Under the pieces are notes generated by a model, which saw nothing but the letters and a program-made list of their open reading frames with translations, ran no database searches and was not told the origin of the DNA. A DNA stretch of 27,278 nt. Origin: Perkinsela sp. CCAP 1560/9 (Eukaryota > Protista > Euglenozoa: Kinetoplastea). The stretch lies in assembly GCA_965644495.1 (NCBI GenBank), contig CBFFSA010000072.1:1-27278 (forward strand), given 5' to 3'. Below, piece after piece: positions 1 to 25,289 of the stretch (positions within the stretch are counted from its first letter, which is position 1; each line of letters begins with the position of its first letter). A program made the translations under genes and the position numbers.

Positions 1-3000
1 TCCTCTTTCTTCCTCTTTCTTCCTCTTTCTTCCTCTTTCTTCCTCTTTCTTCCTCTTTCTTCCTCTTTCTTCCTCTTTCTTCCTCTTCTTCCTCTTTCTT
101 CCTCTTGTCTTCCTCGTTTCTTCCTCTGTCTTCCTCTTTCTTCCGCTTTCTTCCTCTTTCTTCCTCTTTCTTCTCTTTCTTCCTCTTTCTTCCTCTTTCT
201 TCCTCTTTCTCCTCTTCTTCTCTTTCTTCCTCTTTCTTCCTCTTTCTTCCTCTTTCTTCTCTTCTTCCTCTTTCTTCCGCTTCTTCCTCTTTCTTCCTCT
301 TTCTTCCTCTTTCTTCCTCTTTCTTCCTCTTTCTTCCTCTTTCTTCCTCTTTCTTCCTCTTTCTTCCTCTTTCTTCCTCTTTCTTCCTCTTTCTTCCTCT
401 TTCTTCCTCTTTCTTCCTCTTTCTTCCTCTTTCTTCCTCTTTCTTCCTCTTTCTTCCTCTTTCTTCCTCTTTCTTCCTCTTCGTCTCTCTTTCTTCCTCT
501 TTCTTCCTCTTTCTTCCTCTTCTTCCTCTTTCTTCCTCTTTCTTCCTCTTTCTTCCTCTTTCTTCCTCTTTCTTCTTTCTTCTTCTTCCTCTTCTTCCTC
601 TTTCTTCCTCTTTCTTCCTCTTCTCTCTCTTTCTTCCTCTTCTTCCTTCTTCCGCTTTCTTCCTCTTTCTTCTCTTTCTTCCTCTTTCTTCTCTTTCTTC
701 CTCTTTCTTCCTCTTTCTTCCTCTTTCTTCCTCTTTCGTCCTCTTTCTTCTCTTTCTTCCTCTTTCTTCTCTTCTTCTCTTCTTCCTCTTTCTTCCTCTT
801 TCTTCCTCTTTCTTCCTCTTTCTTCCTCTTGCTTCCTCTTTCTTCCTCTTTCTTCCTCTTTCTCCTCTTTCTCCTCTTTCTTCCTCTTCTTCCTCTTTCT
901 TCCTCTTCTTCCTTCTTCCTCTTTCTTCCTCTTTCTTCCTTTTCTTCCTCTTTCTTCCTCTTTCTTCCTCTTTCTTCCTCTTCTTCTCTTCTTCCTCTTT
1001 CTTCCTCTTCTTCCTCTTTCTTCCTCTTTCTTCCTCTTTCTTCCTCTTTCTTCCTTCTTCTCTTTCTTCCTCTTTCTTCCTCTTTCTTCCTCTTTCTTCC
1101 TCTTTCTCCTCTTTCTTCCTCTTTCTTCCTCTTTCTTCCTCTTTCTTCCTCTTTCTTCCTCTTTCTTCCTCTTTCTTCCTCTTTCTTCCTCTTTCTTCCT
1201 CTTTCTTCCTCTTTCTTCCTCTTTCTTCCTCTTTCTTCCTCTTTCTTCCTCTTTCTTCCTCTTTCTCCTTTCTTCCTCTTTCTTCCTCTTTCTTCCTCTT
1301 TCTTCCTCTTTCTCTCTTCTTCCTCTTCTCCTCTTCTTCCTCTTTCTTCCTCTTTCTTCCTCTTTCTTCTCTTTCTTCCTCTTTCTTCCTCTTTCTTCCT
1401 CTTTCTTCCTCTTTCTTCCTCTTTCTTCCTCTTCTCCTCTTTCTTCTCTTTCTTCCTCTTTCTTCTCTTTCTTCCTCTTTCTTCCTCTTCTCCTCTTCTT
1501 CCTCTTTCTTCCTCTTTCTTCCTCTTTCTTCCTCTTTCTTCCTCTTTCTTCCTCTTTCTTCCTCTTTCTTCCTCTTTCTTCCTCTTTCTTCCTCTTTCTT
1601 CCTCTTTCTTCCTCTTCTCTCTTTCTTCCTCTTCTCTTCTTCCTCTTCTTCTCTTTCTTCCTCTTTCTTCTCTTTCTTCCTCTTTCTTCCTCTTCTTCCT
1701 CTTTCTTCCTCTTTCTTCCTCTTTCTTCCTCTTTCTTCCTCTTTCTTCTCTTTCTTCCTCTTTCTTCCTCTTTCTTCCTCTTTCTTCCGCTTTCTTCCCT
1801 CTTTCTTCTCTTTCTTCCTCTTTCTTCCTCTTCTTCCTCTTTCTTCCTCTTTCTTCCTCTTTCTTCCTCTTTCTTCCTCTTTCTTCCTCTTTCTTCCTCT
1901 TTCTTCCTCTTTCTTCCTCTTTCTTCCTCTTCTTCCTCTTTCTTCCTCTTTCTTCCTCTTTCTTCCTCTTTCTTCTCTTTCTTCCTCTTTCTTCCTCTTT
2001 CTTCCTCTTTCTCTCTTCTTCCTCTTTCTTCCTCTTTCTTCCTCTTTCTCCTCTTCTTCCTCTTTCTTCCTCTTTCTTCCTCTTTCCTTCCTCTTTCTTC
2101 CTCTTCTTCCTCTTCTTCCTCTTTCTTCCTCTTTCTTCCTCTTTCTTCCTCTTTCTTCCTCTTTCTTCCTCTTTCTTCCTCTTTCTCTCTTTCTTCCTCT
2201 TTCTTCCTCTTTCTTCCTCTTTCTTCCTCTTTCTTCCTCTTTCTTCCTCTTCTTCCTCTTTCTTCCTCTTCTCCGCTTTCTTCCTCTTTCTTCCTCTTTC
2301 TTCCTCTTTCTTCCTCTTTCTTCCTCTTTCTTCCTCTTTCTCCTCTTCTTCCTCTTTCTTCCTCTTTCTTCCCTCTTTCTTCCTCTTTCTTCCTCTTTCT
2401 TCCTCTTTCTTCCTCTTTCTTCCTCTTTCTTCCTCTTTCTTCCTCTTCTTCCTCTTTCTTCTCTTTCTTCCTCTTTCTTCCTCTTTCTTCCTCTTCTTCC
2501 TCTTTCTTCCTCTTTCTTCCTCTTTCTTCCTCTTCTTCCTCTTTCTTCCTCTTTCTTCCTCTTTCTTCCTCTTTCTTCCTCTTTCTTCCTCTTTCTTCCT
2601 CTTCTTCCTCTTCTTCCTCTTTCTTCCTCTTCTCCTCTTCTTCCTCTTTCTTCCTCTTTCTTCCTCTTTCTTCCTCTTTCTTCCTCTTTCTTCCTCTTTC
2701 TTCCTCTTTCTTCCTCTTTCTTCCTCTTTCTTCCTCTTTCTTCCTCTTCTTCCTCTTCTTCCTCTTTCTTCCTCTTTCTTCCTCTTTCTTCCTCTTTCTT
2801 CCTCTTTCTTCCTCTTTCTTCCTCTTTCTTCCTCTTTCTTCCTCTTTCTTCCTCTTTCTTCCTCTTTCTTCCTCTTTCTTCCTCTTTCTCTCTTCTTCTC
2901 TTCTTCCTCTTCTTCCTCTTTCTTCTCTTTCTTCCTCTTTCTTCCTCTTTCTTCCTCTTTCTTCCTCTTCTTCCTTTCTTCCTCTTTCTTCCTCTTCTTC

Positions 3001-6000
3001 CTCTTTCTTCCTCTTTCTTCCTCTTTCTTCCTCTTTCTTCCTCTTTCTTCCTCTTTCTTCCTCTTTCTTCTCTTTCTTCCTCTTTCTTCCTTCCTCTTCT
3101 TCCTCTTTCTTCCTCTTTCTTCCTCTTTCTTCCTCTTTCTTCCTCTTTCTTCTCCTCTTTCTTCCTCTTTCTTCCTCTTTCTTCCTCTTCTTCCTCTTTC
3201 TTCCTCTTTCTTCCTCTTTCTTCCTCTTCTTCCTCTTTCTTCCTCTTCTTCCTCTTTCTTCCTCTTTCTTCCTCTTCTTCCTCTTTCTTCCTCTTTCTCC
3301 TCTTTCTTCCTCTTTCTTCCTCTTTCTTCCTCTTTCTTCCTCTGTCTTCCTCTTTCTTCCTCTTTCTTCCTCTTTCTTCCTCTTTCTTCCTCTTTCTTCC
3401 TCTTTCTTCCTCTTCTTCCTCTTTCTCCTCTTTCTTCCTCTTTCTTCCTCTTTCTTCCTCTTTCTTCCTCTTTCTTCCTCTTTCTTCCTCTTTCTTCCTC
3501 TTTCTTCCTCTTTCTTCCTCTTTCTTCCTCTTCTTCCTCTTCTTCCTCTTTCTTCCTCTTTCTTCCTCTTTCTTCCTCTTTCTTCCTCTTTCTTCCTCTT
3601 TCTTCCTCTTTCTTCCTCTTCTCCTCTTCTCTCTCTTCCTCTTCTCCTCTTTCTTCCTCTTTCTTCCTCTTTCTTCCTCTTTCTTCCTCTTTCTCCTCTT
3701 TCTTCCTCTTTCTTCCTCTTTCTTCCTCTTTCTTCCTCTTTCTTCCTCTTTCTTCCTCTTTCTTCCTCTTTCTTCCTCTTCGCTTTCTCCTCTTCTTCCT
3801 CTTTCTTCCTCTTTCTTCCTCTTTCTTCCTCTTTCTTCCTCTTTCTTCCTCTTTCTTCCTCTTTCTTCCTCTTTCTTCCTCTTCTTCCTCTTTCTTCCCT
3901 TTCTTCTCTTTCTTCCTCTTTCTTCCTCTTCTTCCTCTTTCTTCCTCTTTCTTCCTCTTTCTTCCTCTTTCTCCTCTTCTTCTCTTTCTTCCTCTTTCTT
4001 CCTCTTTCTTCCTCTTTCTTCCTCTTTCTTCCTCTTTCTTCCTCTTTCTTCCTCTTTCTTCCTCTTTCTTCCTCTTTTCTTCCTCTTTCTTCCTCTTTCT
4101 TCTCTTTCTTCCTCTTTCTTCCTCTTTCTTCCTCTTTCTTCCTCTTTCTTCCTCTTTCTTCCTCTTTCTTCCTCTTTCTTCCTCTTCTTCCTCTTTCTTC
4201 CCTCTTTCTTCCTCTTTCTTCCTCTTCGTCCTCTTTCTTCCTCTTTCTTCCTCTTTCTTCCTCTTTCTTCCTCTTTCTTCCTCTTTCTTCCTCTTTCTTC
4301 CTCTTTCTTCCTCTTTCTTCCTCTTTCTTCCTCTTTCTTCCTCTTTCTTCCTCTTTCTTCCTCTTTCTTCCTCTTTCTTCCTCTTTCTTCCTCTTTCTTC
4401 CTCTTCTTCCTCTTCTTCCTCTTTCTTCCTCTTTCTTCTCTTCTTCCTCTTTCTCCTCTTTCTTCCTCTTTCTTCCTCTTTCTTCCTCTTTCTTCCTCTT
4501 TCTTCCTCTTTCTTCCTCTTTCTTCTCTTTCTTCCTCTTTCTTCCTCTTTCTTCCTCTTTCTCTCTTCTCCTCTTTCTTCCTCTTTCTTCCTCTTTCTTC
4601 CTCTTCTTCCTCTTTCTTCCTCTTTCTTCCTCTTTCTTCCTCTTTCTTCCTCTTTCTTCCTCTTTCTTCCTCTTTCTTCCTCTTTCTTCCTCTTCTTCCT
4701 CTTTCTTCCTCTTTCTTCCTCTTTCTTCCTCTTTCTCCTCTTTCTTCCTCTTTCTTCTCTTTCTTCCTCTTTCTTCCTCTTTCTTCCTCTTTCTTCCTCT
4801 TTCTTCTCTTTCTTCCTCTTTCTCCTCTTTCTTCCTCTTTCTTCCTCTTTCTTCCTCTTTCTTCCTCTTTCTTCCTCTTTCTTCCTCTTTCTTCCTCTTT
4901 CTCCTCTTTCTTCCTCTTTCTTCCTCTTTCTTCCTCTTCTTCCTCTTTCTTCCTCTTCTTCCTCGTTCTTCCTCTTTCTTCCTCTTTCTTCCTCTTCTTC
5001 CTCTTTCTCCTCTTTCTTCCTCTTTCTTCCTCTTTCTTCCTCTTTCTTCCTCTTTCTTCTCTTCTCCTTCTTCCTCTTTCTTCCTCTTTCTCCTCTTCTC
5101 CTCTTTCTTCTCTTTCTTCCTCTTTCTTCCTCTTTCTTCCTCTTCTTCCTCTTTCTTCCTCTTTCTTCCTCTTCTCCTCTTTCTTCCTCTTTCTTCTCTT
5201 TCTTCCTCTTTCTTCCTCTTTCTTCCTCTTTCTTCCTCTTTCTTCCTCTTTCTTCCTCTTTCTTCCTCTTTCTTCCTCTTTCTTCCTCTTTCTTCCTCTT
5301 TCTTCCTCTTTCGTCCTCTTTCTTCCTCTTTCTTCCTCTTTCTTCCTCTTTCTTCCTCTTTCTTCCTCTTCTTCCTCTTTCTTCCTCTTTCTCCTCTTCT
5401 TCTCTTCTCTCTTTCTTCCTCTTTCTTCCTCTTCTTCCTCTTCTTCCTCTTTCTTCCTCTTTCTTCCTCTTTCTTCCTCTTTCTTCCTTCTTCCTCTTCT
5501 TCTCTTTCTTCCTCTTTCTTCCTCTTTCTTCCTCTTTCTTCCTCTTTCTTCCTCTTTCTTCCTCTTTCTTCCTCTTTCTTCCTCTTTCTTCCTCTTTCTT
5601 CCTCTTCTTCTCTTTCTTCCTCTTTCTTCCTCTTTCTTCCTCTTTCTTCCTCTTTCTTCCTCTTTCTCCTCTTTCTTCCTCTTTCTTCCTCTTTCTTCCT
5701 CTTTCTTCCTCTTTCTTCCTCTTTCTTCCTCTTCTTCCTCTTTCTTCCTCTTTCTTCCTCTTTCTTCCTCTTTCTTCCTCTTTCTTCCTCTTTCTTCCTC
5801 TTTCTTCCTCTTTCTTCCTCTTTCTTCCTCTTTCTTCCTCTTTCTTCCTCTTTCTTCCTCTTTCTCTCTTTCTTCTCTTCTTCCTCTTTCTTCCTCTTTC
5901 TTCCTCTTTCTTCCTCTTTCTTCCTCTTTCTTCCTCTTTCTTCCTCTTTCTTCCTCTTTCTTCCTCTTTCTTCCTCTTTCTTCCTCTTTCTTCCTCTTTC

Positions 6001-8870
6001 TTCCTCTTTCTTCCTCTTTCTTCCTCTTCTTCCTCTTTCTTCCTCTTTCTTCCTCTTTCTCCTCTTTCTTCCTCGTCTTCCTCTTCTCCTCTTTCTTCCT
6101 CTTTCTTCCTCTTTCTTCCTCTTCTTCCTCTTCTCCTCTTTCTTCCTCTTTCTCCTCTTTCTTCCTCTTTCTTCCTCTTTCTTCCTCTTTCTTCCTCTTC
6201 CTTTCTTCCTCTTTCTACCTCTTCTTCCTCTTTCTTCCTCTTTCTTCCTCTTTCTTCCTCTTTCTTCCTCTTTCTTCCTCTTTCTTCCTCTTTCTTCCTC
6301 TTTCTTCCTCTTTCTTCCTCTTTCTTCCTCTTTCTTCCTCTTCTCCTCTTTCTTCCTCTTTCTTCCTCTTTCTTCCTCTTCTTCCTCTTTCTTCCTCTTT
6401 CTTCCTCTTTCTTCCTCTTTCTTCCTCTTTCTTCCTCTTTCTTCCTCTTTCTTCCTCTTTCTTCCTCTTTCTTCCTCTTTCTCCTCTTTCTTCCTCTTTC
6501 TTCCTCTTTCTTCTCTTTCTCCTCTTTCTTCCTCTTTCTCCTCTTTCTTCCTCTTCATCCTCTTTCTTCCTCTTTCTTCCTTCTTCTCTTCTTCCTCTTT
6601 CTCCTCTTTCTTCCTCTTTCTTCCTCTTTCTTCCTCTTCTTCCTCTTTCTTCCTCTTTCTTCCTCTTTCTTCCTCTTTCTTCCTCTTCTTCCTCTTCTTC
6701 CTCTTTCTTCCTCTTTCTTCTCTTCTTCCTCTTTCTTCCCTTCTTTCTTCCTCTTTCTTCCTCTTTCTTCCTCTTTCTTCCTCTTTTCTTCCTCTTTCTT
6801 CCTCTTCTTCCTCTTTCTTCCTCTTTCTTCCTCTTTCTTCCTCTTTCTCCTCTTCTTCCTCTTTCTTCCTCTTCTTCCTCTTTCTTCCTCTTTCTTCCTC
6901 TTTCCTCTCTTCCTCTTTCCTCTTCTCCTCTTTCTTCCTCTTCCTTCCTCTTTCTTCCTCTTTCTTCCTCTTTCTTCCTCTTTCTTCCTCTTTCTCCTCT
7001 TTCTTCCTCTTCTCTTCTTCCTCTTTCTTCCTCTTTCTTCCTCTTTCTTCCTCTTTCTTCCTCTTCTTCCTCTTCTCCTCTTTCTTCCTCTTCTTCCTCT
7101 TTCTTCCTCTTTCTTCCTCTTTCTCCTCTTTCTCTTCCTCTTTCTTCCTCTTTCTTCCTCTTCTCCTCTTCTCCTCTTTCTTCCTCTTTCTCCTCTTTCT
7201 TCCTCTTTCTTCCTCTTTCTTCCTCTTTCTTCCTCTTTCTTCCTCTTTCTTCCTCTTTCTTCCTCTTTCTTCCTCTTTCTTCCTCTTCTTCCTCTTTCTT
7301 CCTCTTTCTTCCTCTTTCTTCCTCTTCTTCCTCTTTCTTCCTCTTTCTCCTCTTCCTCTTTCTTCCTCTTTCTCCTCTTCCTCTTTCTTCCTCTTCTTCC
7401 TCTTTCTTCCTCTTTCTCCTCTTTCTTCCTCTTTCTTCCTCTTTCTTCCTCTTCTTCCTCTTTCTCCTCTTCTCCTCTTCTTCTCTTCTTCCTCTTCTTC
7501 CTCTTTCTCCTCTTTCTTCCTCTTTCATCCTCTTTCTTCCTCTTTCTTCCTCTTCCTTCCCTCTTTCTTCCTCTTTCTTCCTCTTTCTTCCTCTTTCTTC
7601 CTCTTTCTTCCTCTTCTTCCTCTTTCTTCCTCTTTCTTCCTCTTTCTTCCTCTTTCTCCTCTCCTCTTTCTTCCTCTTTCTTCCTCTTTCTTCCTCTTTC
7701 TTCCTCTTCTTCCTCTTTCTTCCTCTTTCTTCCTCTTTCTTCCTCTTTCTTCCTCTTATCTTCCTCTTTCTTCCTCTTTCTTCCCTCTTTCTTCCTCTTT
7801 CTTCCTCTTTCTTCCTCTTTCTTCCTCTTTCTTCCTCTTTCTTCCTCTTTCTTCCTCTTTCTTCCTCTTTCTTCCTCTTCTTCCTCTTTCTTCCTCTTTC
7901 TTCCTCTTTCTTCCTCTTCTCCTCTTTCTTCCTCTTTCTTCCTCTTTCTTCCTCTTTCTTCCTCTTCTCCTCTTCTTCCTCTTTCTTCCTCTTTCTTCCT
8001 CTTTCTTCCTCTTTCTTCCTCTTTCTTCCTCTTTCTTCCTCTTTCTTCCTCTTCTCTTTCTTCCTCTTTCTTCCTCTTTCTTCCTCTTTCTTCCTCTTTC
8101 TTCCTCTTTCTTCCTCTTTCTTCCTCTTTCTTCCTCTTTCTTCCTCTTTCTTCCTCTTTCTTCCTCTTTCTTCCTCTTTCTTCCTCTTTCTTCCTCTTTC
8201 TTCCTCTTTCTTCCTCTTTCTTCCTCTTTCTTCCTCTTTCTTCCTCTTTCTTCCTCTTTCTTCCTCTTTCTTCCTCTTTCTTCCTCTTTCTTCCTCTTTC
8301 TTCCTCTTTCTTCCTCTTTCTTCCTCTTTCTTCCTCTTTCTTCCTCTTTCTTCCTCTTTCTTCCTCTTTCTTCCTCTTTCTTCCTCTTTCTTCCTCTTTC
8401 TTCCTCTTTCTTCCTCTTTCTTCCTCTTTCTTCCTCTTTCTTCCTCTTTCTTCCTCTTTCTTCCTCTTTCTTCCTCTTTCTTCCTCTTTCTTCCTCTTTC
8501 TTCCTCTTTCTTCCTCTTTCTTCCTCTTTCTTCCTCTTTCTTCCTCTTTCTTCCTCTTTCTTCCTCTTTCTTCCTCTTTCTTCCTCTTTCTTCCTCTTTC
8601 TTCCTCTTTCTTCCTCTTTCTTCCTCTTTCTTCCTCTTTCTTCCTCTTTCTTCCTCTTTCTTCCTCTTTCTTCCTCTTTCTTCCTCTTTCTTCCTCTTTC
8701 TTCCTCTTTCTTCCTCTTTCTTCCTCTTTCTTCCTCTTTCTTCCTCTTTCTTCCTCTTTCTTCCTCTTTCTTCCTCTTTCTTCCTCTTTCTTCCTCTTTC
8801 TTCCTCTTTCTTCCTCTTTCTTCCTCTTTCTTCCTCTTTCTTCCTCTTTCTTCCTCTTTCTTCCTCTTTC
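1..8870. repeat. Tandem array of 10-mer TTTCTTCCTC (GAGGAAGAAA on minus strand); candidate telomere or terminal satellite
   Basis: Almost purely pyrimidine + strand from base 1. Perfect units over ~8060-8870; frequent short deletion variants further left. The repeat is certain; its telomeric role is inferred. Confidence 0.97.
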
Positions 8871-8941
8871 TTTCGATGAAGCACATTGAAAGTTGTACAC
8901 TTTCGATGAATCTTCATCGAAGGTGTTTTTGACTTTTTTTT
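8870..8941. repeat. Left inverted repeat (72 bp), shorter than the right-hand repeat block
   Basis: Exact reverse complement of 14511-14582 (CTTTCGATGAAGCACATTGAAAGTTGTACACTTTCGATGAATCTTCATCGAAGGTGTTTTTGAC-T8). Confidence 0.95.
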
Positions 8942-9107
8942 TATTTTTTCAAATCTTCACGCAAACGTTTTTCGCGGATCCATATAGACATTTTGACTAT
9001 TTTGGTACTTCATCGAAGTGTTTTGTGAAGGCTCGTAGAGGAATTTCACCGTTTCTTCAGTTTATCTTCATCGAAGCGTTTTTGACTGATCCATATACAT
9101 ATTTTGA
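8902..9107. repeat. Degenerate subterminal repeats with ~55-bp period (CTTCATCGAAG..GTTTT; GATCCATATA..TTTTGA)
   Basis: Motif copies near 8902, 8955 (degenerate), 9009 and 9067; GATCCATATA at 8977 and 9088. Confidence 0.7.
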
Positions 9108-9322
9108 GCGACAATTCTGCGGAAGGGGTAAACACAGGATTTTCGTTGAGTACTCAACGAACGGAAATTCACGGTGGAAATCAAGGACTTTTGCATAAGT
9201 CAAGGACTTTTGTGGAACATCCAAGAATTTTTTTTGATTTTCATTTTCCGTGCGTTCAGTATCCTACACTTCGCTATATACGTTGACAACGCCTGCGTAG
9301 CGAAAACTACGAAATTTAGTGA

Positions 9323-9545
9323 GCTTCGCAAATTGCTTCCCACTAACGACGCACAGGGGAACCCTACGCGGGGTACGGCTCAGGCCCGCTCACGCGGGCC
9401 CTCGCCGTTTCGCGGCCGCGCGCACCCCCGCTCACGCGGGGGCCCCCGCGCGGCCAAAATGGGTACTAAAATTTGTTATCAAGGTAGTTGGGCTTCGCAA
9501 ATTGCTTCCCACGAATGGGTACTAAAATTTGTTATCAAGGTAGTT
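9323..9545 (+). promoter_or_regulatory. 5' leader of the YR element with GC-rich hairpins and direct repeats
   Basis: Hairpin GGCCCGC-TCAC-GCGGGCC (9383-9400) and hairpin CCCCCGC-TCAC-GCGGGGG inside a GGCCGCGCG/CGCGCGGCC stem (9414-9455). 32-bp direct repeat at 9458/9514 and 21-bp direct repeat at 9323/9492. Function inferred. Confidence 0.55.
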
Positions 9546-9759
9546 TAAAAGTTTACGGTAAGAAATTTAGGCGAGGGCTATTTACTTACGTGGCCGGCGG
9601 GCATTGTACGCGCTGTATTTTAAGCTTTTATATGATTACATTTCAAGTGAAATTATTGATAATATGTATGTATTGTTTCTGGTAGAAATATTGTTCTGTT
9701 TGTTGATTTTGTGTTGTGTGAAGGCTATTCTTCAAAGTTTATTTACACGTTTTCGAAGA

Positions 9760-10830
9760 ATGTCACGAATTGTGAGCGCGGTTTCTAGAGCGATATCACT
9801 CGGACGTGCACGCAGCCCTGATCCGGTACCTCCTGAGTCTCCTCGCAGTTCTCCTCGGGCGACCCGTCATACTCTCAACCCTGACCAGGTTGAGGGTATA
9901 TTGCAAGGAGAGGATATAGCGACCCCGCTTAGTGATTCCGCAAAGTCCGATTTTTCGCAAAAAGTCCGTTTTTTACTTACCCGGGGCCACCGCGTATGGA
10001 TTCGCGCTATTTGGGGACACAAGGACGACAACGCGCGCCACACTGTCACGGGACGAGTTTATTTTCTCAATCCCGAAGACCCGGTGGGGAGTGAGTTGAA
10101 GGCCCGGTGGGACGACGAGCCTGATGTTGAGTACGGGTTTCCGTTTCCTGACATACACTATTTCTCCATCGAACTTGCGAAGGTCCAGGCCAGGATGCCC
10201 GGGGGGGAGCATGTGGAAAACCCTGTAACTTCCATCGCGCGTGTACCGGTGTCGGACCCCAAAGATTTTTCCCCGGTGATTCCGAAGACGTGGGGCCCTT
10301 GGGTGGAGTCAGAAGATGAGTTTAAACCGCGTGAGTTGATCCGCGAGTTACGGGACACCCCGGAGTTAGGAGTTCGTTTTAATCCCCCGCCTGCGCGAGA
10401 ACGACTGTTCCAACTTCTGACAAAGTGGATCTACGCAGCTCGTCAGCTGCAAGACTGGTCAACAGGATATTTTTATGAAATTGCAACTGGCTTGATTGAA
10501 GAACTCCGTAATCATTACTGGGCTGCTGCGGGTGCGCCGGTAGAGCGCGTACAGCAAAGACTCCACCAGGTCTCTACCCCCGAAGACGTTTATGGTAAAA
10601 CGATGCTCGAAGAGCAATTGAAGCAAACACGTATAAATCGTCGCCAAGGGCAGCAGCAACTGTTCTATAACTGTCGTGCTCCTGGGCATATACGGGCGAA
10701 CTGTCCCCAGCTACGTCAACCGGTTTTCTCCCGGGGGGTGGCGAGTGGCGCTGCACAGACGCAGACAACGTTCCGTCGCGGCGAAAGACGGACGATCCAA
10801 TATGGAGTATCATTTTATTTATTAAAATGA
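9760..10830 (+). CDS. gag: Gag-like protein of the YR retrotransposon (C-terminus altered by an insertion)
   Basis: Part of the 408-aa ORF; ATG 9760 is preferred because the upstream frame is T-rich and low-complexity. C-terminal knuckle F-YN-C-RAPG-H-IRAN-C matches CX2CX4HX4C with the first Cys replaced by Phe. Confidence 0.8.
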   Translation: MSRIVSAVSRAISLGRARSPDPVPPESPRSSPRATRHTLNPDQVEGILQGEDIATPLSDSAKSDFSQKVRFLLTRGHRVWIRAIWGHKDDNARHTVTGRVYFLNPEDPVGSELKARWDDEPDVEYGFPFPDIHYFSIELAKVQARMPGGEHVENPVTSIARVPVSDPKDFSPVIPKTWGPWVESEDEFKPRELIRELRDTPELGVRFNPPPARERLFQLLTKWIYAARQLQDWSTGYFYEIATGLIEELRNHYWAAAGAPVERVQQRLHQVSTPEDVYGKTMLEEQLKQTRINRRQGQQQLFYNCRAPGHIRANCPQLRQPVFSRGVASGAAQTQTTFRRGERRTIQYGVSFYLLK

Positions 10831-10998
10831 GATCCTTATTAAAAAATAAGGAAAGGTCTTACAATAAGGAAAGGTCTTACAATAAGGAAAGGTCTTACAA
10901 TAAGGAAAGGTCTTACAATAAGGAAAGGTCTTACAATAAGGAAAGGTCTTACAATAAGGAAAGGTCTTACAATAAGGAGAGGTCTTACAATAAGGAAA
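10803..10998 (+). mobile_element. 196-bp insertion carrying 8+ copies of 18-mer AATAAGGAAAGGTCTTAC, flanked by 9-bp TSD GATCCAATA
   Basis: GATCCAATA at 10794-10802 and 10999-11007; array at 10845-10998; removing the insert restores gag ...ATC CAA TAG. Confidence 0.85.
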
Positions 10999-11011
10999 GA
11001 TCCAATAGGGA

Positions 11012-12169
11012 TTGTCCCCCACCCCAAAAATTCCTACTCGTGCTCGAGCCTTGAAGAGGCAGCGAGCGAAATTGCCAGGATATTTGTGCGCTTCGCGCAT
11101 AAAGTTTGTATGGAACGGTGCTCGATATGTGAGCACCGACGGAAATCAGAAGAGGGCCAGGAGGCCGTTACTCGTGACACAGACAAGTCAAAACGCAAGC
11201 TTGACGGATCATATATGTGTGAAGAGAAGTTCGAACCGCGCCGAGTTGCCGATGACAGCAAGAGTGAGACGCGTTATGTTGACAAACAAAATGTTAGGAA
11301 TCCAGACCGAGGACGCGAACGCTCCGGTGTTACGAGACGCAATTCGTCCCATGTGGGCTCACACTACGTGGAGGTCGAGAGAGGCAATATGGAGTCGAAT
11401 GGAGGACTTTTGTCGAGTAAAAATGATACACCCTTCCGCTCTCAACGCCGTTTTATTCCTCGATGCACAAAAATTGGCAATGTCGACAAGATTAGCGTAC
11501 GCCCGCGGGTTGCATACGATGTACACTCTAATGAACGAAAACACAATTCCTCTGAAATTATACTCAAAGGCGCTGCAAGCGCAGGGAGCTCTCGAACCTC
11601 AGCGACAGATGCAACCTCTAACACAGTATCTGCTAACGAAACTTTACAAAAGCGTCACGCCATCACAGGCCATCGCAATCTTGATTTGCTGGAAGGCTGC
11701 AGCGCGCTGGACGGAAGTCGCCGAGCTACAGGCCGACCAATTTCTGAGCATTGCCGAGCAGGAAATCGTGATTTATTGGGGAAGAAGCACAAAGACAACA
11801 CGTCTCAATCCATACCGCCCATACATGCACGCCATAATATCAGGACCGGGGACAGAGCAAATAGCGAATTACTTGAGACGCCTTCCGAAAAACCAAAAAC
11901 TGTGCAGGACCACAGTTCGAGAGATGGACCACGAAATAAGAAGGGTGCTAGGAAACGGGTATGGCACCCACTCTATAAAACGGGGGGCTGTAACGTATCT
12001 ACTTCAGGAAGTCGCCAACGGCCACCTCAACTTGTCGGAGGTGCAAATCCTCACAAAGCATCTGAGCTTAGAGAGTCTTCTCCGATACAATGCTCAGCAG
12101 TTGACGACAGCAAGAGCACTGGGCACGCACCGAGTGTCAGCGCGATTGCCCGGACCCTTTCTCCAGTAG
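11012..12169 (+). CDS. Tyrosine recombinase (retrotransposon integrase)
   Basis: Catalytic residues in order: AAR(WTE), STKT, HSIKRG, LTKH, LLRY. Start codon uncertain. Confidence 0.9.
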   Translation: MSPTPKIPTRARALKRQRAKLPGYLCASRIKFVWNGARYVSTDGNQKRARRPLLVTQTSQNASLTDHICVKRSSNRAELPMTARVRRVMLTNKMLGIQTEDANAPVLRDAIRPMWAHTTWRSREAIWSRMEDFCRVKMIHPSALNAVLFLDAQKLAMSTRLAYARGLHTMYTLMNENTIPLKLYSKALQAQGALEPQRQMQPLTQYLLTKLYKSVTPSQAIAILICWKAAARWTEVAELQADQFLSIAEQEIVIYWGRSTKTTRLNPYRPYMHAIISGPGTEQIANYLRRLPKNQKLCRTTVREMDHEIRRVLGNGYGTHSIKRGAVTYLLQEVANGHLNLSEVQILTKHLSLESLLRYNAQQLTTARALGTHRVSARLPGPFLQ

Positions 12170-13758
12170 AAATGCAAAAGTGTTATAAAGAAGTCCCTTA
12201 CTTAAAACGACATACATTAGTTTGTGCACGCCGGAGTTCTAAGTTAGCAAAGCCGAAGGACTTTCATATTCCGTTACACGTCAAGTCGGGAGTTCCAACT
12301 ATTGACATGAATAAAATTCGAAGCTGGATGTCTACAGCTACCGCCTCAAGATTCGAACAGGTTTGGAAAGAATTATTACGCATGCCATTTTGCCCTGAAA
12401 CATCTCCTCGTATGAAAGGAAGTTTGAGCCATACAGATCACGAACTCTTACTTAAGCATGGTATTATTTCTGCGGTATCCGAAAAGGAAGAAAACAAACG
12501 TCCCTCAATGCAATTTCTGGTTCCTTTCACGGTAATTGAAACGGACGATGAGGGCAAGCAACGTCGACGATTTATTTCTTGGACGCGTTCTGACAACGCT
12601 CGGCTGAGTGAATACGTTCCTCAGGTACCCCTACTACATCCATCTAAATATTTGCATAGAGTTAAGGCGCAGTCAGGTCTGAAGAGGGACCTAGTGTGTG
12701 GTTTTTATCAAATCTCGATTCCGCAGGAATGTCGTCAAAAATTTCGGTTTTATTCAGACACGGGGGTGTTGTATGAAATGCGCGTTTTGCCGATGGGGCA
12801 TCGGTGCGCCCCGGAATTGATGCACACAGTCACGGCTACGATCGCCGGTATGACGGGATACTGTAAATCAACCTTTTCACAAGGCGCATTAGATATCTAC
12901 GTGGACGGTGTACGGTTTGCTGGTACAGATCAGCAGGCCTGTCAGTACAAGAAATGGGTTGATGACCGCGCGCAAGAGACAGGAGCGCGCTTTAAAGACT
13001 CGGGACTCCTTCCCATGAAGGAGTACGTATTTAACGGTGTTAGGTACGACCATCGCGTACACAAGGTCAACCTGGGACCCAAAGTTGTCGCAAAATTGGA
13101 GAAGGATCAATTTACACGTACTACATTTCTGGAGCTCGAGGCGACGGTGGGGCGCCTCCTGTACTGCTCCTCAGTAGTGGGAATTATTATTCCAAAATAC
13201 TATTTCGCCCTTAAAATATGTCAACGCCGCATAAACTTGTTAAACCGCATGCCGGAGATGGCCGAAGAGGTAGTGGATCTACCGAACAAAATACGAGATA
13301 TGCTACGGCAGTGGCGAAATGAACTTGTTAGGAACATACCGGTTGAACCTCTCCCGCATCCTGAAATAGCTCCCCGGGAGCATAATTTGTATACAGACGC
13401 CTCAGCGAAAGGATGGGGAGGCATCCTCTACCTCGATTCAGGCGAAGTGATCATCGTGGGGGGGCAATGGAAATCCTTTTGGCAATACGAAGTAAATAGG
13501 GCAGAAGCGACAGCCGTTAGACTTTCCCTCCAGAAGTTGGAGAGACATTTCACCCGGGGCACGTGCTTGCAATTATGGGTAGATAACACTTCGTGCCAAG
13601 CAGCGCTAAACAGAAAAATTTCAAAATCAGGAGGAATATCAAACCAACTCGGTAAGGTTTTGCAATGGGCGAAGGACCGGGGCGTCTGCATCAAGGCCGA
13701 TTACGTCTCAACGAAAGACAACCCGGCAGACCCGGTCAGTAGGAATTTTGCACGATAG
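11086..13758 (+). CDS. Reverse transcriptase-RNase H (DIRS-type); N-terminal ~360 codons overlap the YR ORF
   Basis: RT motifs KRDLVCGFYQI, LPMGHRCAP, YVDG; RNase H residues YTDAS, NRAE, WVDNTS, NPADPVSR. Alternative start is ATG 12172, just after the YR stop. Confidence 0.92.
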   Translation: MRFAHKVCMERCSICEHRRKSEEGQEAVTRDTDKSKRKLDGSYMCEEKFEPRRVADDSKSETRYVDKQNVRNPDRGRERSGVTRRNSSHVGSHYVEVERGNMESNGGLLSSKNDTPFRSQRRFIPRCTKIGNVDKISVRPRVAYDVHSNERKHNSSEIILKGAASAGSSRTSATDATSNTVSANETLQKRHAITGHRNLDLLEGCSALDGSRRATGRPISEHCRAGNRDLLGKKHKDNTSQSIPPIHARHNIRTGDRANSELLETPSEKPKTVQDHSSRDGPRNKKGARKRVWHPLYKTGGCNVSTSGSRQRPPQLVGGANPHKASELRESSPIQCSAVDDSKSTGHAPSVSAIARTLSPVEMQKCYKEVPYLKRHTLVCARRSSKLAKPKDFHIPLHVKSGVPTIDMNKIRSWMSTATASRFEQVWKELLRMPFCPETSPRMKGSLSHTDHELLLKHGIISAVSEKEENKRPSMQFLVPFTVIETDDEGKQRRRFISWTRSDNARLSEYVPQVPLLHPSKYLHRVKAQSGLKRDLVCGFYQISIPQECRQKFRFYSDTGVLYEMRVLPMGHRCAPELMHTVTATIAGMTGYCKSTFSQGALDIYVDGVRFAGTDQQACQYKKWVDDRAQETGARFKDSGLLPMKEYVFNGVRYDHRVHKVNLGPKVVAKLEKDQFTRTTFLELEATVGRLLYCSSVVGIIIPKYYFALKICQRRINLLNRMPEMAEEVVDLPNKIRDMLRQWRNELVRNIPVEPLPHPEIAPREHNLYTDASAKGWGGILYLDSGEVIIVGGQWKSFWQYEVNRAEATAVRLSLQKLERHFTRGTCLQLWVDNTSCQAALNRKISKSGGISNQLGKVLQWAKDRGVCIKADYVSTKDNPADPVSRNFAR

Positions 13759-14510
13759 TTCGATTCAACCGTATTTATATGAAATTTAGTTTATATAGAA
13801 TAATAATAATAATAAAAAAAAAAAATAATAATTTCGTTTAGGTTTTGGAGACGCTACGAAAGTCTGGTCAATTTTCGAGCATTCTTCATACAGGTAGTGA
13901 TTTTAGTTACCAGTGACAAGGAATTCATTACGAGTGAGCGGGTTGGCGGCTGCGGAGCGTGGGGGGCTAAGCCCCTTCACAAAGTATTCCCTTTTCTTCA
14001 ACATTCTGAGTTTAATTGTGTGGTACCAGGGCCCCTTTTTGAATATTTATACAGCGCGCGTTATTCAGCAATAGGAGAAATCTACTAGCATCATAAGAGG
14101 AACCATAGCATAACGAGAAGTAGACGTTCAATATAAGCTATGTTTTCAATTAGATACTTCTTTACTTTATCATATTCGTGATTTGATTATGTTAATGTCC
14201 GGATGCCCTCGCCGTGGATTTCGGTCAAGATTATCAAGATTATCAAGTAGTTATCAGTTGGGCCTTTCTTTCTCCTCCCTCTAAGGTCCTGCAGATTTTT
14301 TACGTACCCTGTGACCGTTCGTTCGTGTGAACGTTCGTTGAGAAATCAACGAACGTACCCCCAAGCCAAAATGTGAAAGAAAACGGAAAGTCAGAATTCA
14401 GACAAAAAAACAAAAAATTATTGAATTTAAAATGAAATTATATGTTTCATGCAACGTGTTTTCAACAGCCAATGGAAAAATTCGTTCAAAAACAAAAAGT
14501 TAAAAAAGTC

Positions 14511-14612
14511 AAAAAAAAGTCAAAAACACCTTCGATGAAGATTCATCGAAAGTGTACAACTTTCAATGTGCTTCATCGAAAGTGTACAACTTTCGATGAA
14601 GATTCATCGAAG
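14511..14612. repeat. Right inverted repeat block of 30-bp palindromic units
   Basis: 14511-14582 complements 8870-8941. One extra unit completes CTTCATCGAAAG-TGTACAA-CTTTCGATGAAG (14571-14601). Confidence 0.92.
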
Positions 14613-14626
14613 GTCCCCCCTAGCCA

Positions 14627-16033
14627 CGAATCGTACACAAGTTGCGGGACCGCTGGCTTGACGGACACTCAATCCTGACCGTGGATATGCAAAATGCATT
14701 CAACTCACCCTCACGAGAGGAAATTGCAAAGTGCGTTTTTGCTTTCGCTACACTGAAACCCTTTCAAAGGTTCTTTGCGGCCGAATATTCAAATGCTTCC
14801 GAACTTTTATTTTATGGCTCCGATGGCAGCCTGACGGACATTATAATGAGCTCAGCAGGTGTACGGCAAGGGTCCGCTCTGGCTAGTCTTTACTTTTGCG
14901 TATTCTGTCAACCAATACTCGAGACACTGGCCTCCGAATTTCCAGGTATTGAAATAAATGCATACATTGACGATATAACGTTAGTGTCTCGAGATTCAAC
15001 CGAACTGGACAAAGCATTCTTTAGGCTCAAAGGTCTCCTAGAAGAAAAACAGGTGAAACTAGCCGAGGCAAAATGCGTTTGGTTCAGAGGAAAATCCGGA
15101 AATTCCATACCGAATTCGCTGAGCACCCAAGGTGTAAAGTCGGAGGACGAAGCGGTCAAAGTACTCGGAGCGTATGTTGGAGAAAACAACACAATAAGTG
15201 AACGACTTTTGCGTCAACTAGAGAAGCAGGTCACAGCTTTTCGGCGGCTAAAACGAATGGGCATCAATAATATATCGATGATTCTTTTAGCAAAATGTGC
15301 CAATGTTCGTCAACAATACCTGATTCGTGTCCACCCGCCCGAAACAACAGAGAAAGCATCATCACAATTTGATCAAGAGGTTGAAAATGTGGTAGAGTCT
15401 TGGATTGGTCCACTCTCTCCCGATCAAATGAAAATTGTACGATTACCCGTTAAGTTGCACTGGAAGACGGCTATGCCGATCCGGACCGGATCTCGTTATT
15501 TATTGGAACAACGGCGAGGTATACTATGACTTAACCGTAATACACGAGCTTTCGCAGAGCAATAGGTCTAAAAAATGCATCCAACTAATCAACGACGCGA
15601 TCAAAAGGAAACATAACACGTACGTGCAGACGAATATTATACGAGAAGAATGCTTCCAATGCTTGCCTATTCTGTCCGGAGGTTCTTTACATCGCAACAC
15701 GCAAAGTCTGATCCATGCGATAGCAGATGCTGCCGTACTAGACCGGCAGGGGGTTGAACAGGAATTTAAACTACTGGTGCAGGAATTAAATGGTCTAGCA
15801 GTTTATTCCCACCTTCGGAAATACCTAAACGAAGAAAGCGCTACGCAGGAATTCAGTCTATAAATCAGCTCATTAGTTTTTTATATCATAATACGAAATA
15901 TTACACAGCTTGCAAAGTCGCGCAAGCATTATATAAGCCTTATCTCTGATCCGTCATTGTGGCAGAATGCAATGACAGGGGTCTTACAAAAAACGATGGA
16001 TGGGTATTTACTATAGAAAATATGCAATATTCC

Positions 16034-16064
<31 letters not shown>

Positions 16065-18443: not shown

Positions 18444-18460
18444 GTTTCTGTACCTTGTTG
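18444..18460 (+). other. 3' part of a spliced-leader-like exon (GTTTCTGTACCTTGTTG)
   Basis: Identical to 25222-25238; resembles the kinetoplastid SL 3' half GTTTCTGTACTWTATTG. Confidence 0.6.
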
Positions 18461-18469
18461 TACCTTTAC

Positions 18470-25201: not shown

Positions 25202-25238
25202 AATTTAACGATAAAGATACAGTTTCTGTACCTTGTTG
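25202..25238 (+). other. Spliced-leader (mini-exon)-like sequence without intron
   Basis: AATTTAACGATAAAGATACAGTTTCTGTACCTTGTTG compared with kinetoplastid SL AACTAACG...GATACAGTTTCTGTACTATATTG; followed by AA rather than a GT donor. Confidence 0.75.
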
Positions 25239-25289
25239 AACCTTTTTTTCCTTTCTTTAGTTACTCCCCGGGGATTAGCGTCCTTCCCC

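Follow-up and report, generated by a model that had tools for sequence, protein, structure and literature searches.

The 27,278-bp contig analysed here (C72, referred to below as the window; the genome of Perkinsela sp. CCAP 1560/9 consists of 21 Mb in 110 contigs) begins with an array of a purine-only 10-mer that stops inside a palindromic repeat, and an initial annotation had taken this palindrome for the site of a tyrosine recombinase (YR) element that targets or creates chromosome ends. The main value of the present work is a correction, in that what seemed a recombinase site at a chromosome end proves to belong to the terminal inverted repeat (TIR) of a DNA transposon of the Merlin superfamily and not of the YR retroelement, which is nested within that transposon. 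The Merlin identity of the palindrome and the two-element nest together remove the proposed mechanism connecting the YR with telomeres. The centre of the palindrome is nevertheless a recurrent, non-random breakpoint at independent loci, and on balance we think it probable that the junction arose by terminal truncation at a fragile Merlin TIR palindrome that was then capped by the terminal 10-mer repeat, a reading for which cleavage by the YR is not needed.

The array, (CTTCCTCTTT)n, occupies positions 1–8869 (read directly; 908 copies by TRF; all features of the window are given on the + strand) and its purine strand, AAAGAGGAAG, points 5′ to 3′ towards the contig end. About 850 bp nearest the junction are perfect and the distal part is about 75–80% perfect. 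Direct reading places the switch from array to arm at 8870, with CTTTCGATGAAG at 8870–8881, and from there the sequence runs CTTTCGATGAAG CACATTGAAAG TTGTACA CTTTCGATGAAT CTTCATCGAAGG TGTTTTTG... onward; the CTT at 8870–8872 (AAG on the other strand) fits array unit and arm alike, so the breakpoint is defined to 0–3 nt. At the right end the intact 31-bp palindrome CTTCATCGAAAG-TGTACAA-CTTTCGATGAAG, with a 12-7-12 arm–spacer–arm layout, could be read at 14571–14601 as originally described. What the left end of the window copy lacks was defined by alignment to 19 unique left ends of full length from this repeat family, and consists of the outer 44 nt made up of GGGTAGGGGGGA + CCTTCGATGAAG + CTTCATCGAAAG + TGTACAA, and because these are absent the start of the array coincides with the position of the 7-bp spacer. 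The statement that the array begins at the spacer position with about 3 nt of AAG microhomology is therefore confirmed, while the accompanying statement that exactly one arm is kept on the left holds for the outer palindrome only, as a complete inner arm–spacer–arm copy at 8882–8911 is kept as well. For a single junction the agreement with a spacer edge carries little weight alone (p about 0.13 for a 4-nt window, four spacer edges and an end of about 120 nt), and in a genome-wide search no second site was found with two array units within 30 nt of the arm motif in either order.

Assignment of the palindrome to a Merlin-type element follows from the structure of the repeat family to which it belongs. 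The left TIR (8870–8957, without its outer 44 nt) comprises an arm at 8870–8881, a degenerate arm at 8882–8892, the inner spacer TTGTACA at 8893–8899 and two arms at 8900–8911 and 8912–8923; an 88-nt inverted copy of this end lies at 14495–14582, and the right end continues through the palindrome to 14625. The inner 20-mer of the end has 89 matches in the genome. Most copies are about 1.0–1.1 kb long and correspond to window positions 8870–9545 fused directly to 14223–14625 (seen as such in more than 10 short copies), so that the window holds the left part (8870–9545) and the right part (14223–14625) of one element of about 1.1 kb, the right part with a complete TIR (about 14495–14625) and an intact tip, TCCCCCCTAGCC, at 14614–14625. 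Reading inward from the flank, the consensus full end is GG[G/C]TAGGGGGGA CCTTCGATGAAG CTTCATCGAAAG TGTACAA CTTTCGATGAAG CACATTGAAAG TTGTACA CTTTCGATGAAT CTTCATCGAAGG..., and the 31-bp arm–spacer–arm unit is present in 0, 1 or 2 copies per end. TIRs measure about 60–130 bp with tips GG[G/C]TAGGGGGGACC..., and 11 independent insertions have both such GG... tips and perfect 8-bp target-site duplications (TSDs). An autonomous relative of 2,910 bp (C5:15973–18882) shares these TIRs, is flanked by the TSD GGGAAGCT and holds an open reading frame (ORF) of 442 aa (L092:1633–2961, equivalent to C5:17432–18760, – strand) that matches DDE_Tnp_IS1595 (PF12762) with E 8.3e-14 and 52 bits against a cut-off of 27. 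In a second subfamily, with arms GAGT.ACTC and spacer TTGTAGA, the adjacent ORF (L091) also matches DDE_Tnp_IS1595 (E 5.8e-12), and the transposase of these relatives has more than 100 matches in the genome.

Tips beginning with GG, TSDs of 8 or 9 bp, TIRs of 24–462 bp and a DDE_Tnp_IS1595 transposase are the hallmarks of the Merlin superfamily (PMC8101967). As the family described here shares with these IS1016/IS1595-like elements the 5′-GG tips, the 8-bp TSDs, a TIR length within that range and DDE_Tnp_IS1595 in its autonomous relatives, we assign the palindrome-bearing element to the superfamily. It differs from it in the variable number of 31-bp palindromes per TIR and in that the whole end of about 95 nt is palindromic, and the window copy differs further in having no transposase, being non-autonomous, and in being truncated at one end. 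Its right tip is flanked by a 5′-truncated, CRE-like fragment of a reverse transcriptase (RT) of the non-long-terminal-repeat (non-LTR) type with a poly(A) (14626–16062). The left counterpart of this flank and of the TSD is missing from the window, and with the left flank lost the TSD of the window copy cannot be read.

The evidence that the palindrome centre is a preferred breakpoint comes from the Merlin family as a whole. Its unique ends comprise 44 full ends and 10 simple truncations of independent origin. Of these truncated TIRs eight are broken no more than about 3 nt from the outer spacer and two elsewhere. Set against a stretch of 85 nt, eight of 10 breaks within a 14-nt window that has the outer spacer at its centre give a binomial p of about 2e-5, the window having been defined post hoc. 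The breaks form two classes, in one of which the spacer is lost and the sequence starts at the inner arm (three ends: the window, C2:680k and C9:613k), while in the other the spacer is kept and preceded by AAG (five ends: C64:11k, C4:669k, C32:22k, C1:1522k and C36:46k). A short TIR palindrome thus acts as a precise and recurrent breakpoint. The recurrence of one breakpoint at independent loci, which the initial annotation had named as a sign in its favour, is accordingly real, but it does not extend to the array, which adjoins no other copy of the repeat. At C4:669k the truncation is a local deletion of about 45 nt to the original flank with CTT microhomology. No truncated end has a TSD, which rules out the use of these ends as alternative transposon ends. 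As a single strand the 31-mer folds into a hairpin of −11.5 kcal/mol (z −6.7) and the whole end folds at −31.6 kcal/mol. Comparison of arm pairs between subfamilies 1 and 2 (window 14528–14614; L089:195–290) revealed compensating changes (GATGAAG.CTTCATC in one, GATGAGT.ACTCATC in the other) that preserve the palindromes, which argues from sequence comparison that the symmetry is functional, perhaps as a dimer-binding site or as a hairpin. Separately, two partial Merlin copies at C40:50797–50866 (L003/L050) stand head to head over a single arm–spacer–arm, forming an inverted duplication centred on the spacer.

The supposed 5.7-kb YR element and its inverted ends resolve into two elements, a VIPER/TATE-type YR retroelement (9546–14222) nested within the Merlin copy. 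The interval 9546–14222 recurs as 99–100% copies on C24, C8, C31 and C25, each with different unique flanks and none with inverted ends; these copies begin with TAAAAGTTTACGG and finish with CGCCGTGGATTTC, neither of which has similarity to the palindrome arms. In the window the insertion point (...CAAGGTAGTT / GGTCAAGATT...) lies at 9545/9546, 676 nt inward and outside the palindromes. The empty site ...caaggtagtt/GGTCAAGATT... in L016 corresponds exactly to the window flanks, and since these flanks are adjacent in uninterrupted Merlin copies the insertion was precise and made no TSD. As the 31-bp site lies in the Merlin TIR and is absent from the four other YR copies, it is neither carried nor targeted by the YR element. 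The annotated integration of the YR element into the terminal repeat is made unlikely by the other flank, which is the non-LTR RT fragment and not array, and integration of either the Merlin element or the YR retroelement into the array was rejected on the same evidence. The only other array junction that involves the YR retroelement (C103:2193/2194) lies at a position equivalent to 13732 of the window, at the 3′ end of the RT/RNase H (RH) ORF and in reverse orientation, and has 0 nt of microhomology. With this junction placed elsewhere and no other copy of the repeat adjoining array, targeting of the array by the YR is contradicted by the very outcome that its proposers had named as speaking against it. 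A general association of the YR retroelement with Merlin TIRs was also considered and rejected, as their coordinates coincide on C72 and C25 alone.

Array boundaries across the genome were listed with a purine-detecting pattern and then read directly. Of about 62 contig ends inspected, nine carry the 10-mer (the left ends of C72, C21, C28, C65, C103 and C8 and the right ends of C8, C38 and C16), where contig ends are not proven chromosome ends and the terminal position of the 10-mer is read on contigs. In all nine the purine strand runs 5′ to 3′ outward and the array reaches the last base of the contig; the junction partners are unrelated, the repeat phase differs at each array end and the arrays beside the junctions are perfect. 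These features support the view that the 10-mer array behaves as a terminal repeat placed on broken sequence. The part of the original proposal in which repeats are added to a broken end is in keeping with this, while the part given to the YR is unsupported. No (TTAGGG)4 was found anywhere in the genome. With a purine-only 10-mer at no fewer than nine contig ends, always in one polarity and joined to broken, unrelated partners, and no TTAGGG arrays, the question of how the chromosomes are capped becomes directly testable. Pfam searches of ORFs adjoining other array junctions returned nothing useful, and no relevant paper came up when the literature was searched in full text for the repeat strings (10-mer and 12-mer); a search for Telomerase_RBD (PF12009) gave no match but was uninformative, as the controls were also silent. 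Two further inspected ends carry 18-mers.

The course of events set out below, the part played in it by a hairpin and the manner of repeat addition are our inference from these observations. A non-autonomous Merlin element of about 1.1 kb would have inserted into a CRE-like non-LTR element, and a VIPER/TATE-type YR retroelement would then have entered the Merlin copy without a TSD. All DNA distal to the outer palindrome centre of the left TIR would next have been lost, that is 44 outer TIR nucleotides, the 8-bp TSD (the distal copy of which would read ACGAATCG) and the 5′ part of the CRE-like element; the intact right tip beside the RT fragment implies that target DNA and TSD once existed on the left and are now gone. 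Finally, the broken end would have been capped with (AAAGAGGAAG)n using 0–3 nt of microhomology (AAG), the repeats being either added de novo or copied from another end; on this view the chromosome broke in a subterminal nest of mobile elements. We propose that an intrinsic proneness to breakage at this site in the Merlin family placed the break at the palindrome centre; by default, the site would fold into a hairpin or cruciform that is then cut at the edges of its loop.

Both halves of this scheme have counterparts elsewhere. Hairpins and cruciforms formed by palindromes are cut by nucleases of the Mre11-Rad50/SbcCD type, and the present case resembles such palindrome-induced breakage in the clustering of its breaks on the midpoint of a nearly perfect palindrome of 31 bp, in one spacer-centred inverted junction and in the variable palindrome copy number; it differs in that 31 bp is short for a strongly fragile palindrome and in that the breakpoints are unusually precise (AAG in five of five truncations that retain the spacer). 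Chromosome healing, or de novo telomere addition at breaks, occurs in yeast, Plasmodium and ciliates. Likeness to it lies in terminal repeats that stand directly on non-telomeric sequence with 0–3 nt of microhomology, in the distal loss and in the varying positions and phases, and unlikeness in a purine-only 10-mer where a TTAGGG-type unit would be usual and in a second, G-rich 12-mer at two ends.

Several observations weigh against the preferred account of truncation and capping. The array/Merlin junction is single in the assembly and rests on one contig. A G-rich 12–13-mer, (ATCCAGGGGGGG)n, occurs with the polarity of a telomere at the starts of large contigs (C6:1–600 and C9:1–100; L062, L070), on account of which the 10-mer may not be the true telomere. 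The 10-mer also forms internal arrays, at C10:59.3–60.0k (at least 669 bp), at C1:397–409k (111–121 bp each) and at other positions, and C8:1–2478 (L034) is an odd fold-back at a contig end, where the + strand begins with (GGAAGAGGGA)n over about 1 kb and then changes to (CTTTCTTCCT)n; these two related arrays in inverted orientation are the product either of an artefactual fold-back or of a palindromic end that is genuine. As to the break itself, ends of subfamily 2 fold nearly as well (−9.6 kcal/mol), yet no spacer breaks were seen in about 19 of them, so that hairpin stability by itself may be insufficient to make a hot spot. All five spacer-retaining truncations, moreover, keep or share exactly AAG, a constancy that seems to point to greater site specificity than would be expected of a nuclease recognising structure alone and that suggests either cuts 13 nt apart or an obligatory 3-nt microhomology.

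Some of these points are shared with other explanations of the junction. That it is an artefact of assembly or library preparation, a chimeric or fold-back long read having joined the array to a hairpin-forming palindrome, would account for its uniqueness, for the imperfection of the distal array on a contig of only 27 kb and for the inverted arrays at C8:1–2478, and palindromes are a known source of chimeric reads; we nevertheless consider this unlikely, as the roughly 850 bp of array beside the junction are perfect, the same build recurs at eight further contig ends and the seven other spacer-edge truncations lie within large contigs between ordinary flanks, which indicates that the breakpoint class is biological. 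We give a similarly low weight to the idea that the 10-mer is an ordinary satellite at which contigs happen to stop, the junction marking no chromosome end and having formed when an internal array recombined with this sequence, either ectopically or through microhomology. The internal arrays on C10, C1 and other contigs and the closer likeness of the G-rich 12-mer to a telomerase product fit that idea, as does, for what an uninformative search is worth, the lack of a Telomerase_RBD match, but an internal satellite would give both polarities where nine of nine terminal arrays show one (p about 0.002–0.004), and it does not explain why the arrays extend to the last base of their contigs.

Enzymatic cutting of the palindrome has also to be considered. 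The Merlin transposase might have made the break, by an aberrant cut at subterminal repeats of its binding site or through failed repair after an attempted excision, before the array capped it. The arms are repeated subterminal TIR motifs, they covary between the subfamilies (GAAG.CTTC as against GAGT.ACTC) as protein-binding or structural sites do, and the family looks active, with perfect TSDs and open transposase ORFs. The distance from break to next arm, however, is 7–10 nt where that from tip to arm is 12 nt, the lack of TSDs shows that truncated ends were not used as transposon ends, and subfamily 2 has no such breaks, so that we regard the transposase as an improbable source. Least probable of all in our estimation is a cut at the spacer edges of the 12-7-12 site by a YR, from the nested element or from another VIPER-like element acting in trans, after which the break would be healed as repeats were added to it, or would recombine with array. 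By its letters the palindrome would pass for a core site of the lox/FRT kind (12-bp inverted arms, a 7-bp spacer and breakpoints at both spacer edges), the spacer-kept and spacer-lost classes (five and three ends) would fit a 7-nt staggered cut that was filled in or trimmed, and recently active elements of this genome encode intact YRs of Cre fold. Unlike a lox or FRT site, though, this one belongs to the end of a DDE transposon and is carried by no YR element; the ends and insertion sites of the YR retroelement are unlike the arms, its diverged copies do not generally lie beside Merlin TIRs, the C103 junction is away from any such site, and, should AAG/CTT be retained sequence, 13 nt would separate the cuts, more than a YR can span. 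A wider proposal, in which the purine-only 10-mer is a genuine non-canonical chromosome cap added de novo and the Merlin palindromes are preferred break sites cut by an enzyme (a YR in trans or another site-specific nuclease), with transposon ends seeding chromosome ends, we hold to be about as improbable as a break made by the transposase.

The nested retroelement itself has the order gag-like, YR, RT/RH, which together with split direct repeats of the form A1...B1-A2-B2 and the lack of a TSD is characteristic of elements of the VIPER/TATE/Ngaro type (PMC6681497, PMC12278014). Its likeness to the kinetoplastid VIPER/TATE elements extends to an overlap within this ORF order and to the split repeats, which three of the four other copies carry (L059, L060 and L061, with second copies of 9546–9758 and 13947–14222). 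The window copy and one other (L058) have A1 (9546–9758) and B1 (13947–14222) alone, without A2-B2, and in this they differ from VIPER/TATE, as they do in that no named homologue was found for the window element and that it lies outside the terminal repeat, whereas TATE occupies a fixed position in TTAGGG repeats. The mobilome of this genome is very rich in Merlin elements and recently active, with VIPER-like elements bearing split direct repeats alongside DDE transposons.

Within the retroelement the gag-like ORF (9604–10830) has a weak zf-CCHC match, and its 3′ end is disrupted by an insertion of about 190 bp with an 18-mer minisatellite (10807–10998), flanked by the direct duplication GATCCAATA(T/G)GGA. 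This insertion is skipped by the other aligned copies (checked base by base in L059, ...GATCCAATAGGGA TTGTCCCC...), so that gag/YR is interrupted in the window copy only. The YR ORF (11012–12169, 385 aa) has a Cre-like fold, established by a fold search: its AlphaFold model has a pLDDT of 73 overall and above 85–90 over most of two folded domains, and the best Foldseek matches, which span the two domains, are to Cre (E 1e-6, probability 1.0). Ten relatives share the conserved residues R232, K261, H320-x-x-K323, H350 and Y359. The position of the second catalytic arginine (H-x-x-R) is a conserved lysine in this YR and in all relatives (H320-S-I-K323), followed by R or H. Searched by sequence against the PDB the YR ORF gave only DARPin noise, and by profile only weak matches to P2 integrase. 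The RT/RH part of an 890-aa ORF (12172–13758) is below threshold in Pfam, its homologues carry RVT_1 (PF00078) and RT_RNaseH (PF17917), and it had no match in the PDB. The homologues found for YR and RT/RH are anonymous ENA, JGI or Logan proteins, none of them named.

Some further observations concern the repeats. Ends of the Merlin family often lie in or beside tandem repeats, among them (GTA)n, a 14-mer, a 17-mer that abuts a truncated arm, and 18-mers that lie to either side together with a TSD (L013, L017, L024, L027, L090/L095/L106); related 18-mers terminate the right ends of C5 and C1. The G-rich 12-mer has an internal copy at C60:44.7k. At C1:397–409 kb (L035) the internal 10-mer stretches of 111–121 bp are distributed one to each copy of a tandem unit of about 5.1 kb. 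Lastly, a motif GTTTCTGTACCTTGTTG... recurs just after poly(A), beside 10-mer or 18-mer repeats and close to the terminal arrays at C8-L, C21-L and C38-R (C2:664173–664205, L036; window 18444–18467 and 25222–25245; C38:71.7k), and could represent either the 5′ end of the CRE-like elements stacked at ends or their target.

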